A stretch of 64,000 nt of DNA, from the sequence record OR620964.1. One strand, 5' to 3'. The position numbers and the translations under genes were made by a program. The notes beneath the pieces are model-generated. The model was not told the DNA's origin. It searched no databases and saw only the letters and a program-made list of their open reading frames with translations. Position 1 is the stretch's first letter. Every line of letters starts with the position of its first letter. This document shows, one piece after another, positions 6,282 to 12,272 of the stretch.

Positions 6282-7001
6282 ATGAACACACTTATCTTTA
6301 ATGCGGAAGCGGAGCACGTTGTCGATAACATCGAGTCATTGCAGGCGTTGATTGATGACCGTACGTCACCAGTAACAATCTATGGCTATGATGTTCCTAA
6401 AGAACAGGGCATGCATGTTTGCCAAGATATCGCCAGCGGTAAAATCTATTATGGCGCTGTCGAATATAATGCCGCTGGATTTGCGATGTTCTCCACACAA
6501 ACAGAAGTAGGAACATATTACTGGTTCTATGATACAAATAGCCCTCTTTACCTAGGCTACCGTTCTGGCTGTGACCGCAAACTATCTGATCTTAACAACT
6601 GGGTTTTAATTTGTCCTAAACTTCTAAATAAGGACCAGAATAAAATCACAGTATATGCATCTGAGCATATTGTATATATCCAGGCGCTGGAAACACAAAT
6701 ACGTAACCTTGTTGCACAGGCAAATCTAGATCAGGTCGAACTGTGCATGGTTGATTTAGACCAACCTTTGTGTGATTGTGATGAAGATGGTGACGTAAAT
6801 GATAGCGATGTTTCACAGGAAACTTTGGCTGCCATCATACGTGATTTGCAATCTCAATTCGGTTCTGCGGTTCAGTACAGCGAGGCAGAACGTGCTTGGA
6901 AAGATTTGTGCAAGATCTTCGGAGAAGACTTGGCCCAGCCTGTATGGACTGCGTATAAAGAACTTTATGCTAAGATGAGTATAACCGAATGTACTGAATA
7001 G
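6282..7001 (+). CDS. hypothetical protein
   Basis: AGGA RBS, 239 aa. Confidence 0.75.
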   Translation: MNTLIFNAEAEHVVDNIESLQALIDDRTSPVTIYGYDVPKEQGMHVCQDIASGKIYYGAVEYNAAGFAMFSTQTEVGTYYWFYDTNSPLYLGYRSGCDRKLSDLNNWVLICPKLLNKDQNKITVYASEHIVYIQALETQIRNLVAQANLDQVELCMVDLDQPLCDCDEDGDVNDSDVSQETLAAIIRDLQSQFGSAVQYSEAERAWKDLCKIFGEDLAQPVWTAYKELYAKMSITECTE

Positions 7002-7005
7002 CTTC

Positions 7006-7038
7006 TTGTGAAGGTCATTCACTGAGTGGCCTTTGAAA
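7006..7038 (+). repeat. conserved intergenic hairpin repeat, copy 3
   Basis: TTGTG-AAGGTCATTC-ACT-GAGTGGCCTT-TGAAA. Confidence 0.85.
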
Positions 7039-7068
7039 GACACTAATAACAATGTAAAGGAGAGTATA

Positions 7069-7515
7069 ATGGTTAATGTGCTGTTTATCGCAGCATTACT
7101 TATTGCGAGTATGTGCTGTTTGTGTTATGTACGTCCGAGAATAATGCATGGTGTCGTGCGCCTAATCAAGCGAGAGAAGTGCCCGCTTACAAAATTGACA
7201 GTTGATCCAGAAATGCCGTTATCCATTGGATTCGGTCGCTGCGTATTCAGCACTAGCCAAACAGATAGATCAGAAATATATGCTATGCGTGTACGTAGTA
7301 GTCCTAATACAATAGTGTTTACCGTGGAGAACATTCAGCCGTGTACTGCGCTGCTTACTTCATGCCTAAAAGAAGATAGCCGATTGCTTAGGCTTCTTGG
7401 ATACACCGTGGATCACATTCGTATAGACAATACTTACTATAGAGTGTTATCTACTATGACTGATGAATCCAATACACCGCCTAAGTATATTCGTTTTCTT
7501 TTGGAGAAAAACTAA
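7069..7515 (+). CDS. hypothetical protein with an N-terminal transmembrane segment
   Basis: AAGGAG RBS; hydrophobic VLFIAALLIASMCCLCY. Confidence 0.65.
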   Translation: MVNVLFIAALLIASMCCLCYVRPRIMHGVVRLIKREKCPLTKLTVDPEMPLSIGFGRCVFSTSQTDRSEIYAMRVRSSPNTIVFTVENIQPCTALLTSCLKEDSRLLRLLGYTVDHIRIDNTYYRVLSTMTDESNTPPKYIRFLLEKN

Positions 7516-7958
7516 TGAAACAGACAGTTGAACAAGATATTGATTTGATAGTGGCTGAGTTTGACAAGGCCATGGTTAGTGCTGAGAAATCAGCGTTCGG
7601 ATCTGTCTCTTACTACGTAGAAGACTTAAAGCACACCTCATTGTACTTACGTATTTATACTGGTCGCCAGTGTCGTTGGACGCGCCCAGTAATAGTAATA
7701 TCAACTATAAATGTATACAAGACAGGCAAGGGTACATTCCATGCACTGCTTGCTAAACTCAAGGTGCTTGCGGCCGAGCGGCAGTGGATTATAAAAGTAG
7801 AGAATGTGCTAATGCCTGAGTTCAGATCCTATCTGCAACGTCAAGATTTTGTAATGCATGGTGAGAGACATTGTGGAATAGGTAATATGTTTTGGTTCTA
7901 CGATAAGGCCTTACTTCAAGAAGAAGAACTGCCGCCACGTAATCCTAATGGAATTTGA
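7515..7958 (+). CDS. GNAT-fold acetyltransferase-like protein
   Basis: ISTINVYKTGKGTFHALL...VENVL...YLQRQDF resembles GNAT motifs A and B. Confidence 0.45.
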   Translation: MKQTVEQDIDLIVAEFDKAMVSAEKSAFGSVSYYVEDLKHTSLYLRIYTGRQCRWTRPVIVISTINVYKTGKGTFHALLAKLKVLAAERQWIIKVENVLMPEFRSYLQRQDFVMHGERHCGIGNMFWFYDKALLQEEELPPRNPNGI

Positions 7959-7964
7959 TCTAAG

Positions 7965-8108
7965 ATGCATAGATTCATTATCGTTGCACTAGCGTGGCTT
8001 ATTTACTTTGAGTTAATGATTCAGGTATTCGATAGGGTGCCTGGTATACTAGAGGTTATACTCGCCTCAGCCGTCCTTGGCTATACAATGAGTGTAAAGG
8101 AGGAATAG
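7965..8108 (+). CDS. small membrane protein (47 aa, not in the ORF track)
   Basis: MHRFIIVALAWLIYFELMIQVFDRVPGILEVILASAVLGYTMSVKEE*; two hydrophobic stretches. Confidence 0.5.
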   Translation: MHRFIIVALAWLIYFELMIQVFDRVPGILEVILASAVLGYTMSVKEE

Positions 8109-8110
8109 AA

Positions 8111-8269
8111 GTGACACAGAATACTGCACCTGCAAAAGAAGTGGATGAGTTCAATCTCGATGATCTTGATATTGACGCAGCCGAACAAAAAGCAGAGCAA
8201 ATGGGTGCTGGTGGTGGAGAAGTATTAGAGCCGTCAAACGTATGCGAGTCAGGTGCTTGCTCAATCTAA
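8111..8269 (+). CDS. 52-aa acidic peptide ending CESGACSI (NrdA C-terminal tail-like)
   Basis: AGGAGG RBS then GTG; read by hand as VTQNTAPAKEVDEFNLDDLDIDAAEQKAEQMGAGGGEVLEPSNVCESGACSI*. Confidence 0.75.
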   Translation: MTQNTAPAKEVDEFNLDDLDIDAAEQKAEQMGAGGGEVLEPSNVCESGACSI

Positions 8270-8320
8270 CTATAACGGCTGGCCTTGTGCTGGCCGTACT
8301 TGTATCTAACGAGGTCAATT

Positions 8321-8836
8321 ATGACAGATGAAATCAAAATTCCTACACTGCCTGCACCAAACCTTATTTCAGGTGAAGGTAAATTCTGGTATAACAGTGA
8401 TCAGATGGTTGCTTTTGCTCGACAAGCGATACTGTTAGATCGCATTCCAGCCACGCTTGAGCAAGACGCCGATATTGAGAATGCGGCGCCCGTTGCTGAT
8501 CCTGATCCTATCATTGACGATACGCCTGATGCTGAGATTGCGGCATGGATACAGACTCAACCGAACGATCCTAATGCAGATAACACCGTACCTAAGTTAG
8601 TGCGGGCACTCCAGTTATTGTATAACCCTGAGATAAAGACAGTAGAAGATTTGACTGAATTACTTCTTCCTACGCTGCAACAGATACTGGTGCATTTTGA
8701 TCTTGATACTGAGCTGGCGCCTGAGTTGCATAACTCACGGATGTCTATTCTGCATTTCCTGATTACTCGAAGCTCTGCATTACTTGACTCTGCTACTGAT
8801 CAGATCGATGCTGTCTATGGACAAAAGGCCAACTGA
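8321..8836 (+). CDS. hypothetical protein
   Basis: GAGG RBS; ATG at 8321. Confidence 0.7.
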   Translation: MTDEIKIPTLPAPNLISGEGKFWYNSDQMVAFARQAILLDRIPATLEQDADIENAAPVADPDPIIDDTPDAEIAAWIQTQPNDPNADNTVPKLVRALQLLYNPEIKTVEDLTELLLPTLQQILVHFDLDTELAPELHNSRMSILHFLITRSSALLDSATDQIDAVYGQKAN

Positions 8837-9372
8837 TGGCTAAAAGTCTCGGCGTCTATTTAACATTTATCCTACGCCACAAGCCTGAGTCAATCGGGCT
8901 TGAAATGGATACTGAGGGTTGGGTTTCTATTCAATCTCTTATTGAGAAATCTCAACGACCAATCACATTTGATCGTCTTATGCATGAGGTTGCGCAGGAT
9001 GAGAAAGGTAGATTCCAAGTATCTACCGATCAGATTCAGATACGATGTGTCCAAGGTCACTCAACGCTTTGTGTAAAGCGCGAGTATCCTACGGCTATTC
9101 CTCCTGATGTATTGTATCACGGCACTAGCGCTGATAACCTAGACAGTATACTATCATCTGGGCTGAACGCTAGTCACCGTCATCACCTGCACCTATCTAA
9201 CAGCCTTGAGACTGCTATTCAGGTTGGCTCAAGACGTAAACAAGAGCTTGTTGTACTGGAGATTGATTCCGGTGCTATGCATAGAGAAGGTCATACGTTC
9301 TTTATCTCTGAGAATAATGTGTGGCTAATTGAATTCGTGCCCCAGAAATACTTAACTGTAATGGGTAAGTAA
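8836..9372 (+). CDS. kptA: RNA 2'-phosphotransferase (KptA/Tpt1 family)
   Basis: LRHKP, DEKGRF, IRCVQGHS, LYHGT, RHHLHLS and VWL motifs. Confidence 0.9.
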   Translation: MAKSLGVYLTFILRHKPESIGLEMDTEGWVSIQSLIEKSQRPITFDRLMHEVAQDEKGRFQVSTDQIQIRCVQGHSTLCVKREYPTAIPPDVLYHGTSADNLDSILSSGLNASHRHHLHLSNSLETAIQVGSRRKQELVVLEIDSGAMHREGHTFFISENNVWLIEFVPQKYLTVMGK

Positions 9373-9452
9373 TGGATAATCCTAAACCAAACACCATCAC
9401 CTGTTGTCTTTATTGGTGGTGAGAAGTATATACGCTCACAGTCAGGCCAACT

Positions 9453-9689
9453 ATGCACTACTCCGTATCCAAGGCTGAGTTTGTTCCGTCCGATGTATTG
9501 CCAGATCAAAATTCTCTTGGTCTATCCAAGATGAAGCTCCGCGCTCACTCTGACTACTATCATAATAATCGTGTTAATGATTGGGCAATGCGCTTCACTG
9601 AGTTTGATATAATGTGCGAGTCCAAGGCAAAGAATCAAGCTAGCACTGAGCTATATACAAAGTACCTGTCCTCTAACCGTGCAAAATAG
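9453..9689 (+). CDS. hypothetical protein (possibly the 3' part of an interrupted gene starting at 9372)
   Basis: 78-aa ORF without a clear RBS; the same frame opens at ATG 9372 with a single TGA at 9420. Confidence 0.35.
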   Translation: MHYSVSKAEFVPSDVLPDQNSLGLSKMKLRAHSDYYHNNRVNDWAMRFTEFDIMCESKAKNQASTELYTKYLSSNRAK

Positions 9690-9733
9690 CGGCTAAAATA
9701 TCACTATCACAGTGGCCTTAAATCTGATATAAT
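9681..9733 (+). promoter_or_regulatory. sigma70-like promoter with upstream box
   Basis: GCAAAATAGCGGCTAAAATA; TATAAT at 9728 (37-nt offset). Confidence 0.8.
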
Positions 9734-9783
9734 ATCAGCATGAGCTACTACGCTCCGGCTACTTTTAATTGAGGATTATTACT

Positions 9784-11178
9784 ATGAAAACGATTAAACA
9801 CACTTTCCGTCTGACTGACTTGGTCCGTATTAGTAAAACCGTTCCTACGAACATGGCCAAGTTTGCTGGCGCAGGCGAAGAAGCTATTATTGTTGGCCGT
9901 AGTTTTGATAGTGACCAGTATCAGTTACACATTAAAAATCTCGGATCAACTGAGTGGTATCCTGCCAGCATCCTTACTCTGATTTCCCATAATAATGGCG
10001 TATTGCTTGATCAGTGGGAAGCTGGTGATTACGGTCGTGCTGAGAAAAAGAAACGCAAGCTGCCTAAAGAGCTGCGTAACTTCACTGCTATCCTGCCTGT
10101 TACCTGCAACGCCGATTGTTCTTTTTGTCCTGAGAAAGAAATGGAACAGAAAGCAAATCAGAAAGAGTGGCAAGATGGTTTGATTGATCAGATCAAACGC
10201 ATGTATAAGAAAACGAAGTTCAACCACGTATCAATCTCTGGTGGCGAGCCTTCCTTGCGTTCGAAGTTCCTATTCGAGACAATCGACCGCATCCAGAAAG
10301 AAACTCCAATCAAGACAGTAGGCCTGACTTCTAATGGCCACTTCCTTGAGAAGCAAAACAGCACGTTCGACTTCTTGGATCGTAACACCACACCTGAAAT
10401 GACCAGCAAGTTGTCGCATCTGAATATCAGTATGCACTCATTCAATCGTGAACGTGCGAACAAGATCATGGGCGTGAACTACAAACAGTCTCTGGAAGAT
10501 TTAGTTCGCTTCCGTCGCCAACTAGGTCGTAATGTTAGCTTTCACATCAACTTCGTGATCAACGATCAGACAGGTCCGATTGCAGAAGAGTTCAAGGCTG
10601 CGGCTGACTTCATGCGCGCCAATCCATACATTGACGTTGTGTTCCGTATTGACTACAACAATGTTGAACTGTCTAAGGCGTTGCGTGACTACGCTATGGA
10701 ATATGAAGCGAACCTAATTGCTGTTGCCACGCGCAAGAAGTGCGCCATGAAAGAACCTAAAGCGCCGAACATCGTTCAGGAGTTTGATCGCTCTTTCGGC
10801 GGCCAGAACAATGAAGATGTTGAGAGCGCTTGGACTACAGGATGCCCATCCTGCTTCACTCATGCGTCGAACATTGTCAATAACAGTCGCGCATACCTGA
10901 AAGCGTCTTCATACGAACCGAACGACGACGAAGAAGAATACACTGAGCTGGTGTATCACATGGACGGCGTTCTGTATTGGGACTGGACTCGCAATGATCC
11001 TGTGACCGAACATTTCGGCCTCGGAAAGAAAGACGAAGACACGCAGCCTAAAGCTGTTAAAGCAAAAGCTGTTAAGCTCACTTTCTTAGTGAAGAAAGCA
11101 GAATGCCGTAGAGTTTCGACTACACAAGACGACGCAACTGGTAGTTGCGACTATGGTTATAGTCGTTGTGGCTACTAA
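9784..11178 (+). CDS. radical SAM protein with an N-terminal SH3-like domain and a Cys/Tyr/Gly C-terminal tail
   Basis: CNADCSFC (CxxxCxxC), SISGGEP, TSNG; GAGGA RBS. Confidence 0.9.
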   Translation: MKTIKHTFRLTDLVRISKTVPTNMAKFAGAGEEAIIVGRSFDSDQYQLHIKNLGSTEWYPASILTLISHNNGVLLDQWEAGDYGRAEKKKRKLPKELRNFTAILPVTCNADCSFCPEKEMEQKANQKEWQDGLIDQIKRMYKKTKFNHVSISGGEPSLRSKFLFETIDRIQKETPIKTVGLTSNGHFLEKQNSTFDFLDRNTTPEMTSKLSHLNISMHSFNRERANKIMGVNYKQSLEDLVRFRRQLGRNVSFHINFVINDQTGPIAEEFKAAADFMRANPYIDVVFRIDYNNVELSKALRDYAMEYEANLIAVATRKKCAMKEPKAPNIVQEFDRSFGGQNNEDVESAWTTGCPSCFTHASNIVNNSRAYLKASSYEPNDDEEEYTELVYHMDGVLYWDWTRNDPVTEHFGLGKKDEDTQPKAVKAKAVKLTFLVKKAECRRVSTTQDDATGSCDYGYSRCGY

Positions 11179-11235
11179 GAGAAAAAGATCATGGCTAGGC
11201 GTGTGAAGCTATAGATCTAATCTAGGAGAAATATA

Positions 11236-11652
11236 ATGCAAAAGTTGTATCAAGCAGAACTCGTCGGACCTAAGCAGTTTCAGGAGCTAAAGACCGAACA
11301 GCAAAAACTCCAACAAAAGTTTTTGAAAAAGTCTATTGAGGCTGCCAATGATATTCTTCTGAATATCGCAGCGGGGAAACCACTGGGCGCCTATCTGAAC
11401 TACCAACAAAAATCGATTATTGAGTATACGAAATGGTTACGCTCTGGTGATTCTGAACATCATGCTACTATCGATGAGGACTCCATCATCCTTATGGTCG
11501 GAGAGATTCGTTGTGTAGATGCAGATTCAGTCTACGCAGAACTGCGCCAGCTTTTCATAGATGCTGGTTGGGGAGAGAAAACTTCTGTACACCGCCGAGC
11601 ATGCCATGACGAATTTTGGGTAATACTGGAGCCTGTGGAGGAACTCGAATGA
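11236..11652 (+). CDS. hypothetical protein
   Basis: AGGAG RBS. Confidence 0.7.
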   Translation: MQKLYQAELVGPKQFQELKTEQQKLQQKFLKKSIEAANDILLNIAAGKPLGAYLNYQQKSIIEYTKWLRSGDSEHHATIDEDSIILMVGEIRCVDADSVYAELRQLFIDAGWGEKTSVHRRACHDEFWVILEPVEELE

Positions 11653-11966
11653 ATAGCGTTTACTACTTCGCTTATCTCACTTGGCGCAAACGTTTAATCG
11701 GACTTGTACTGATATTAGTCGTAGTATTAATTGCTACTGGCTATCTTGGTCTGATTACTGGCCAGTCCTCCATGTGGATAGGTTTTATCTTCTTACTGCC
11801 GTTTGCTATTTGTTGGCACGGCGTCGTGTTCTATGAGCAGTGTGTTGCTTCTGAGTTAAGTGATGCAACCGTTAGCACAGCTTGCTATGATAAGTGGAAA
11901 GCTAGACACGCTGCTTGGTATAAGAAAACCTTTGGTCGCACACCTGTTGATAGAGACCTGCGCTAG
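11649..11966 (+). CDS. membrane protein (two transmembrane segments)
   Basis: GGAGG RBS, ATGA overlap, hydrophobic stretches. Confidence 0.7.
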   Translation: MNSVYYFAYLTWRKRLIGLVLILVVVLIATGYLGLITGQSSMWIGFIFLLPFAICWHGVVFYEQCVASELSDATVSTACYDKWKARHAAWYKKTFGRTPVDRDLR

Positions 11967-11999
11967 TCGCTATTATCGATAACTAAATTGGAGATTAAC

Positions 12000-12272
12000 A
12001 TGGCTACTGAACATAAATTTCGTTTGAACGATATGGTGCGTACAACCTCAAGTAAACCGGGCATTCCTGTGGGTACTGTCGGCATTATCAGTGTACGTGA
12101 CATTTGCAGTGACTACGGTCTCCGCCATGAAGACGGTAGCCAGAGCGCGTGGTTTCATGACAATCAGCTTGAGTTGATTGCTCACGACCAGTGGGAATTG
12201 TTAGACAAGTGGGAAGACTTGGACGAATCTTTCGTTGATGACGAAGAAGGCGAAGATGAGGAGGACGAATAA
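12000..12272 (+). CDS. stand-alone SH3/KOW-like small protein with an acidic tail
   Basis: HKFRLNDMVR...W...LELIAH...LLDKWE, similar to the N-terminus of the radical SAM protein. Confidence 0.7.
   Translation: MATEHKFRLNDMVRTTSSKPGIPVGTVGIISVRDICSDYGLRHEDGSQSAWFHDNQLELIAHDQWELLDKWEDLDESFVDDEEGEDEEDE

Follow-up and report, generated by a model that had tools for sequence, protein, structure and literature searches.

A conserved small protein of enterobacterial jumbo phages ends like the redox tail of the ribonucleotide reductase NrdA

Introduction

Ribonucleotide reductase (RNR) is the gate to all DNA precursors, and of the mobile parts of the class I enzyme, the dithiol tail at the C-terminus is understood least. 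Regeneration through the C-terminal cysteines of the R1 subunit is also the step at which the inhibitor Sml1 acts on yeast RNR.

The cysteine pair of the RNR tail is reduced by thioredoxin or glutaredoxin (PMC4078304, PMC5704485). When tail-acting and active-site-acting reductants were combined in mouse RNR, the activity was up to 3-fold higher (PMC4078304), from which it follows that a second reducing route can add activity, and a passage of the same paper cites Sml1 (its reference 16) as an inhibitor of regeneration via the R1 C-terminus. The redox C-terminal domain is encoded separately in class II RNR, where it is known as NrdJb and forms part of the split enzyme NrdJa+b (PMC5704485). NrdJb is a folded, Cys-rich domain of 150-220 aa that is modelled as zinc-binding and resides in the same genome as its catalytic partner (PMC5704485), and it has no sequence similarity to class I tails. 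As for phages, over half of jumbo-phage genomes share a conserved RNR beta-subunit gene cluster according to a review (PMC13282480).

Here we describe a 52-aa phage product whose C-terminal end resembles the tail of class Ia NrdA and which occurs in a genome where no RNR gene was found. The gene lies in a stretch of 64,000 nucleotides of sequence record OR620964.1 that is referred to as the window. A record position minus 124,000 gives the window position, and the coordinates below are window positions unless a record or contig is named.

Results

The peptide gene and its surroundings

The gene belongs to Yersinia phage fHe-Yen9-02 (OR620964.1), a jumbo phage of 248,678 bp that infects Y. enterocolitica O:9 and whose closest relatives are the Erwinia Alexandravirus-like phages, Erwinia phage Y3 and Dickeya phage AD1 (megablast with window 7000-12000). 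A sequence-only reading of the window had described an unannotated ORF with an AGGAGG ribosome-binding site and a GTG start which annotation pipelines would miss. The observation was confirmed in part: the ORF (52 aa, with a spacing of 7 nt between AGGAGG and GTG), the ribosome-binding site, the tail and the absence of RNR were all found as described, whereas the gene is already carried in GenBank as fHeYen902_167 / WOL24513.1 with the label hypothetical protein. Nor would pipelines overlook it, as the product matches PHROG phrog_10239 and homologues are annotated in related phages. This PHROG is a 47-position profile with no assigned function and no RNR link, and it was matched both by the window protein (E=3.2e-4) and by its relative P0013 (E=6.6e-9). 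The features of the locus are as follows:

8098..8103, plus strand: Shine-Dalgarno sequence AGGAGG with a 7-nt spacing to the GTG at 8111, read from the sequence
8111..8269, plus strand: peptide gene fHeYen902_167 / WOL24513.1, GTG start, TAA stop at 8267-8269, 52 aa
8171..8206, plus strand: the sole predicted helix, residues 21-32, the block of highest pLDDT in the AlphaFold2 model, inside the acidic N-terminal half (residues 1-33)
8210..8221, plus strand: Gly-Gly-Gly-Glu hinge, residues 34-37, invariant or nearly so in the alignments, which opens the tail module
8243..8266, plus strand: NrdA-like dithiol tail, the last 8 residues with Cys45-x4-Cys50-Ser-Ile, assigned by identity with the end of E. 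coli NrdA
8275..8297, plus strand: G+C-rich hairpin of 9 bp directly 3' of the stop codon, -19 kcal/mol, z = -2.9

The N-terminus of the peptide matches the start of the homologue from Serratia phage PCH45 in the alignment. The AGGAGG at 8098-8103 overlaps the last codons of an upstream ORF of 47 aa (fHeYen902_166, window 7965-8108, plus strand, stop codon at 8106-8108) whose product is strongly hydrophobic. This ORF possibly encodes a small membrane protein, and because the AGGAGG sits within its end, it may be translationally coupled to the peptide gene. On the other side, the hairpin at 8275-8297 looks like a terminator, though its U-tract is weak, and in Klebsiella phage Miami an annotated terminator is found immediately 3' of the peptide homologue. 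Two genes downstream of the peptide gene there is an RNA 2'-phosphotransferase of the Tpt1/KptA family (window 8836-9372, plus strand; Pfam E=1e-42). A radical-SAM protein of 469 aa is encoded at window 9769-11178 (plus strand; Pfam E=3e-13); it is annotated as hypothetical in fHe-Yen9-02 and as GTP 3',8-cyclase in Erwinia phage Y3, and its gene, with 75-85% DNA identity across about 35 Erwinia and Dickeya jumbo phages, is the best-conserved part of the 5-kb region.

The product contains 12 Asp and Glu against 2 Lys and Arg residues, with a pI of about 4.05. Its AlphaFold2 model (59-sequence alignment) is mostly disordered with a mean pLDDT of 63 and a single helix at residues 21-32, so that the description of an acidic flexible peptide ending in VCESGACSI is borne out. 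Nothing is confidently predicted after residue 32 (pLDDT 57-62), which leaves a flexible linker ahead of the tail. The module itself begins with the triple glycine and has a simple layout: three Gly, 8 residues, Cys, 4 residues, Cys and 2 residues to the end. A Pfam scan of the 52-aa product gave no family at E<=0.1, including any that would place it with Sml1-like proteins. The acidic N-terminal half was also considered as a mimic of the NrdB C-terminal tail or of the NrdA linker, and this idea was dropped as the likeness (z = 0.65 and 0.32, respectively) is not above shuffled controls and amounts to composition.

Likeness to the NrdA tail

The NrdA of E. coli K-12 (from NC_000913.3) ends in CESGACKI, with the two cysteines at positions 754 and 759. 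With this E. coli protein as the reference tail, BLASTP aligned the last 8 residues of the peptide at 7/8 identity with both sequences at their extreme C-termini (E=0.005 for a single comparison), which upholds the match of 7 of 8 residues that had been described in the sequence-only reading. The homologue of Erwinia phage pEa_SNUABM_39 (P0065) gave a stronger match, with 35 columns reaching to both C-termini, the last 10 residues identical and a BLASTP E-value of 7e-6. The likeness to E. coli NrdA is confined to the last 8-35 residues in these pairwise alignments. From residue frequencies, the chance that any among about 4,300 E. coli proteins has such a tail is ~1e-7.

The comparison with NrdA is by pairwise BLASTP only, against the E. 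coli protein fetched by accession. HMMER searches of the PDB sequences with the family profile, the 20-aa tail, the Miami homologue and P0065 as queries did not return NrdA, and NrdA was absent as a named match from an exhaustive search of 1.84 billion proteins. The common stretch is too short for the HMMER filters, which accounts for the miss.

Among the NrdA tails of phages, that of the T5-like phage S113 has exactly the layout of the peptide family (triple Gly, 8, Cys, 4, Cys, 2). The phiKZ-like phage PA7 has a Cys-x4-Cys pair followed by two residues, the last being Leu, and a T4-like phage has a Cys-x2-Cys pair also followed by two residues with Leu at the end. The rule of two residues after the second Cys, with Ile or Leu as the last, holds for all four NrdA tails examined and for 69/69 members of the peptide family, and the final residues of the family are nearest to the enterobacterial host type among these tails. 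Since the layout is the same as in a phage NrdA tail, it is plausible that the module descends from the 3' end of an nrdA gene and was then selected for a host-type end. The gene used as a DNA query gave no match in E. coli genomes, which excludes a recent DNA-level capture from E. coli.

Conservation of the peptide family

Homologues were found by tblastn in 44 phage records of 212-307 kb. The carriers include the Erwinia pEa_SNUABM phages, Dickeya JA11/13/29/33, Serratia PCH45, Salmonella SA002, Klebsiella Miami and its relatives, and Proteus phage 10. The exhaustive protein search (1.84 billion) gave 15 representatives at E<1e-3, and a profile search gave 64 protein clusters, mostly on contigs of up to 295 kb. 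The family comprises 69 sequences, most of which come from Enterobacterales jumbo phages, with a median of 54 aa and a net charge of -10 for the short members. This is a real, conserved gene family.

All 69 sequences contain exactly two Cys within the last 25 residues and exactly two residues following the second Cys. The spacing between the cysteines is four residues in 63 of the 69, three in five and two in one, so the terminal CxxxxC, which had been put forward as something to look for in related phages, is kept in most and the cysteine pair itself in every one. The final residue is Ile in 68/69 and Leu in 1/69, with a Lys-Ile end in 49/69. Ten of the 69 share all of their last 8 residues with E. 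coli NrdA, and another 25 share 7 of the 8. Nine columns were invariant in the first alignment of 8 sequences, namely G34, G35, G36, E37, E40, C45, G48, C50 and I52 in window peptide numbering.

The carriers of the family are essentially all phages. Of 185,579 bacterial and archaeal genomes scanned, just one gave a match, on contig JAVWLC010000393.1 (L019), a piece of 2.4 kb in a 'Raoultibacter' sp. bin, and as its family member is also found on contigs of about 268 kb, this is probably mis-binned phage DNA; a bacterial origin of the family was dropped on this account. IMG/VR contained four loci only, all isolate-like. The isolated carriers all infect Enterobacterales save for one Stenotrophomonas label on a near-copy of Klebsiella phage Miami. 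The locus in question, of 'Stenotrophomonas phage BUCTxx100', has the gene layout of Miami and a peptide that differs at one residue, and Stenotrophomonas as its host looks doubtful.

Two further contexts stand apart from the others. The homologue P0062 is located directly after an MYG1-family gene (L016:9097-10144) on a 325-kb contig of 29% G+C with RND efflux pump genes; the contig may be bacterial, may come from a very large phage or may be a chimera of the assembly, and the P0062 protein is present on at least 45 contigs. The homologue P0008 is found on a phage contig of roughly 105 kb (L037:1-10141) right after a family A DNA polymerase that shares about 70% DNA identity with phiEco32-like podoviruses, and its gene is 5-7 kb from ThyX and from the class III RNR genes NrdD and NrdG.

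RNR content and links to dNTP genes

No RNR was found among the 342 annotated features of fHe-Yen9-02, and tblastn of the genome with E. coli NrdA and NrdB, with T4-like, T5-like and phiKZ-like NrdA and with PCH45 NrdB gave nothing at E<0.01. The absence of class I RNR was established from tblastn and annotation together, and that of class II and class III from the annotation. The earlier statement that no RNR gene is present in the window can therefore be extended to the whole 248,678-bp phage, and the question whether the nrdA of this genome lacks its tail falls away as there is no nrdA. Because the beta-subunit cluster occurs in over half of jumbo phages (PMC13282480), the absence is a feature of fHe-Yen9-02 and not the rule. 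One gene near the dNTP genes, fHeYen902_275 (record 199503-201581, outside the window; 692 aa, annotated as hypothetical), was tried as a hidden NrdA and rejected, as it is a C5 cytosine DNA methylase split by an intein with Hint and intein-splicing domains. The same intein-in-C5-methylase arrangement is seen on contig L036.

The full RNR content was examined in two carriers, fHe-Yen9-02 and Serratia phage PCH45 (MN334766.1). The PCH45 genome contains, in addition to the peptide, an NrdB with a host-like C-terminal tail:

24783-25889 of L027 (MN334766.1): PCH45 NrdB, 80% identity with E. coli NrdB

No NrdA was found in PCH45 with four NrdA queries, so its NrdB can work only with host NrdA and the phage already supplies one part to the host enzyme. 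At E<1e-120, a host-like NrdB gene is present in 170 phage records, among them many jumbo phages and the 52-kb phiEcoM-GJ1-like phages.

The peptide gene is located between the genes for dCMP deaminase and thymidylate synthase in three related lineages, represented by Alexandravirus pEa_SNUABM_23 and pEa_SNUABM_25, Dickeya JA29 and a 219-kb metagenomic contig. Homologues of these two flanking genes are found at record 193-197 kb in fHe-Yen9-02 with no peptide gene left between them. The sole copy in this phage is found at record 132 kb, which puts about 60 kb between it and the dNTP gene cluster, and is most similar (63%) to the PCH45 type; it looks like a gene that was replaced at a new site. 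No NrdA or NrdB was found within 5-10 kb of the peptide gene in 20 related loci.

Fusions and neighbouring genes

In some phages, the whole module of roughly 45 residues is found at the C-terminal end of larger proteins, behind one of two unrelated N-terminal domains. Five of these fusions are of type A (P0005, P0013, P0014, P0071 and gene 095 of Salmonella phage SA002) and two are of type B (P0007 and P0011). In the free forms of 59-61 aa, the sequence starts with the linker seen in the type A fusions. The type A domain contains no cysteine and has a fair AlphaFold2 model (pLDDT about 80, residues 1-104). A Foldseek search with this model gave nothing in the PDB at E<0.05, and a word-indexed search with the domain gave one further homologue only. 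When a conserved neighbour was sought upstream of the unfused peptides, these genes showed no relationship either among themselves or with the fused domains.

Comparison with described systems

The peptide is like the tail of class Ia NrdA from Enterobacterales and phages in having a flexible acidic or Gly-rich stretch, a Cys-x4-Cys pair and two last residues ending in Ile or Leu, all at the very C-terminus. The sequence hallmarks of a redox tail are all present, with the Cys pair inside the last ten residues (Cys45 and Cys50 of 52), the two-residue Ile end and the flexible linker. Unlike an NrdA tail it is free of the catalytic domain, being a stand-alone product of 52 aa in a genome without RNR, and no catalytic ten-stranded barrel or ATP-cone domain was found by the Pfam scan, which places it outside class Ia NrdA itself. 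The stretch from the glycines to the first Cys is also shorter in the peptide than in E. coli NrdA.

The nearest precedent for a separately encoded redox part of RNR is the class II NrdJb, where the electron-transfer C-terminal part of the enzyme is likewise a gene of its own. The two differ in that the peptide has 52 aa and two Cys and is predicted to be disordered, and in that its catalytic partner, if any, would be that of the host; by its size, its disordered model and the lack of an RNR gene in the genome it does not belong to the NrdJb type of split redox domains. Like Sml1, the peptide is small and disordered and is proposed to act where the C-terminal cysteines of the large subunit regenerate the active site, whereas Sml1 is a cellular inhibitor without a Cys-pair tail. 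The host-like NrdB of PCH45, encoded without NrdA, offers a further parallel, as there the class Ia enzyme of the host receives one of its parts from a phage, which is what we propose for the peptide; NrdB however is a full subunit with a recognised annotation, and the peptide is an isolated motif of 20 residues on a disordered carrier.

Discussion

The reading that we tentatively prefer is that the peptide is a free-standing NrdA tail which would enter the host electron relay from thioredoxin or glutaredoxin to NrdA and re-reduce host NrdA in trans. A phage without RNR has to draw its deoxynucleotides from host NrdA; host thioredoxin 1 or glutaredoxin 1 would reduce the Cys pair of the peptide as is the case with the tail of NrdA itself, and the peptide, once reduced, would in trans pass its electrons on to the active-site disulfide of host NrdA, thereby adding shuttle capacity at a step that can limit turnover. 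The reductases and the active-site channel that recognise the tail of NrdA would also recognise a free tail matched to the host. We infer these steps, as well as their direction (support, not inhibition), from the presence and conservation of the gene, the identity of its tail, the lack of a phage RNR and the links to dNTP genes. Host-directed roles in general, whether as a booster or as a decoy of host NrdA, thioredoxin or glutaredoxin, have indirect support from the gene neighbourhood and from the orphan NrdB of PCH45. The results neither favour nor disfavour the further suggestion of the sequence-only reading, a redox effector directed at thioredoxin-dependent defences.

Several observations weaken the proposal of an auxiliary shuttle. 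A free peptide does not have the high local concentration that tethering gives to a tail, and an element for docking to NrdA was not found. The gene in fHe-Yen9-02 is remote from the dNTP cluster, at the distance of about 60 kb given above, and the lineage of roughly 105 kb combines the peptide with class III NrdD and NrdG, which need no such tail. HMMER gave no named match to NrdA where pairwise BLASTP did. The fusions to two N-terminal domains hint at another partner, and they are the main reason for keeping a partner other than RNR in play.

The alternatives were weighed against these same observations. A free tail might instead compete with the tail of NrdA for thioredoxin, glutaredoxin or the active-site channel of NrdA, and would then lower the regeneration of host RNR or drain the thiol reductases in a logic similar to that of Sml1. 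The identity and conservation of the tail apply equally to such a decoy, and competitors are classically designed as soluble, abundant mimics; we nevertheless consider it unlikely, as to block host NrdA looks self-defeating for a phage that has no RNR and a genome of 249 kb to copy, as the NrdB which PCH45 adds to the host enzyme points to support instead of inhibition, and as no thioredoxin-dependent target is known for these phages. The auxiliary shuttle is therefore favoured over the decoy, given that the phage depends on host NrdA, that its relative PCH45 even adds NrdB and that parallel reductants raise the activity of mouse RNR. The existence of type A and type B fusions, together with the free forms of 59-61 aa that begin with the type A linker, would also fit a general tail, reducible by thioredoxin or glutaredoxin, which serves other phage proteins and whose true partners are the fused N-terminal domains or their unfused equivalents. 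This is quite unlikely in our view, since the type A domains have no cysteine and so are not thiol enzymes in need of a shuttle, the genes upstream of the unfused peptides share nothing with one another or with the fused domains, and the exact match is to host NrdA and not to a generic dithiol motif. We regard as similarly improbable a peptide with no redox role at all, that is a remnant which the 3' end of an ancestral phage nrdA has left behind and which is kept for metal binding, as an acidic virion-internal peptide cut by the head protease, or as a structural tag. Descent from an nrdA 3' end is plausible from the layout shared with a phage NrdA tail, the Glu-containing motifs by the triple glycine presumably resemble head-protease sites, and in SA002 and L034 the gene is positioned ahead of a block of paralogous structural-protein genes; against this, both Cys and the two-residue end are retained by every member across several phage lineages, as is the four-residue spacing by most, no virion proteome evidence came to light, and the terminator-like hairpin and early-gene-like surroundings in fHe-Yen9-02 speak against a structural operon.

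Two other readings are very hard to sustain. The peptide had been suggested to act in trans as the tail of a phage-encoded RNR that lacks one, for which the separately encoded redox part of the class II NrdJa+b is a model (PMC5704485). This fails for fHe-Yen9-02, which encodes no RNR catalytic subunit, and it is highly improbable for the family, as PCH45 has none either, as none was found within 5-10 kb in the 20 loci and as the phage NrdAs examined keep their own tails. From the interpretation in the sequence-only reading, the likeness to the NrdA tail has thus stood, being conserved across the family and exact in some members, and the shuttle for a tailless phage RNR has not. A RiPP precursor with an acidic leader, a glycine cleavage site and a Cys-containing core, matured by the radical-SAM protein encoded 1.5 kb downstream, is brought to mind by that enzyme and by the leader, Gly-Gly and Cys-core look of the peptide. 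We give it next to no weight and dropped it on synteny, as there is no conserved adjoining maturase: the radical-SAM and peptide genes are about 70 kb or more apart in the Alexandravirus relatives, the PCH45 and Miami loci have the peptide without a radical-SAM neighbour, and there is no transporter or protease nearby.

No paper on the tail strings or on a phage mimic of the NrdA tail came up in full-text literature searches. The copy of an NrdA tail in a phage without RNR suggests a so far undescribed way to act on the DNA-precursor synthesis of the host. A wider generalisation, which we hold with more doubt than the preferred reading for the peptide itself, is that large enterobacterial phages lacking the RNR catalytic subunit carry a detached, host-matched NrdA tail which would plug into host NrdA in trans, joined in some lineages by a phage NrdB, so that the phage would run the host enzyme with accessory parts of its own.

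Should the link to RNR prove wrong, what would be left is a conserved small phage protein of an ordinary kind, notable for the striking convergence of its tail. If a detached tail does plug into host NrdA in this way, it would be the first stand-alone RNR redox tail encoded by a virus and the first natural class I tail that works as a separate molecule, and the tail would thereby be shown able to act or compete in that form. It would provide RNR biochemists with a natural probe of the re-reduction step. A PHROG with no assigned function that is present in several jumbo-phage lineages would gain a role, and these phages would possess a minimal viral route to the dNTP supply of the host, at a cost of about 150 bases compared with about 3.4 kb for nrdAB.
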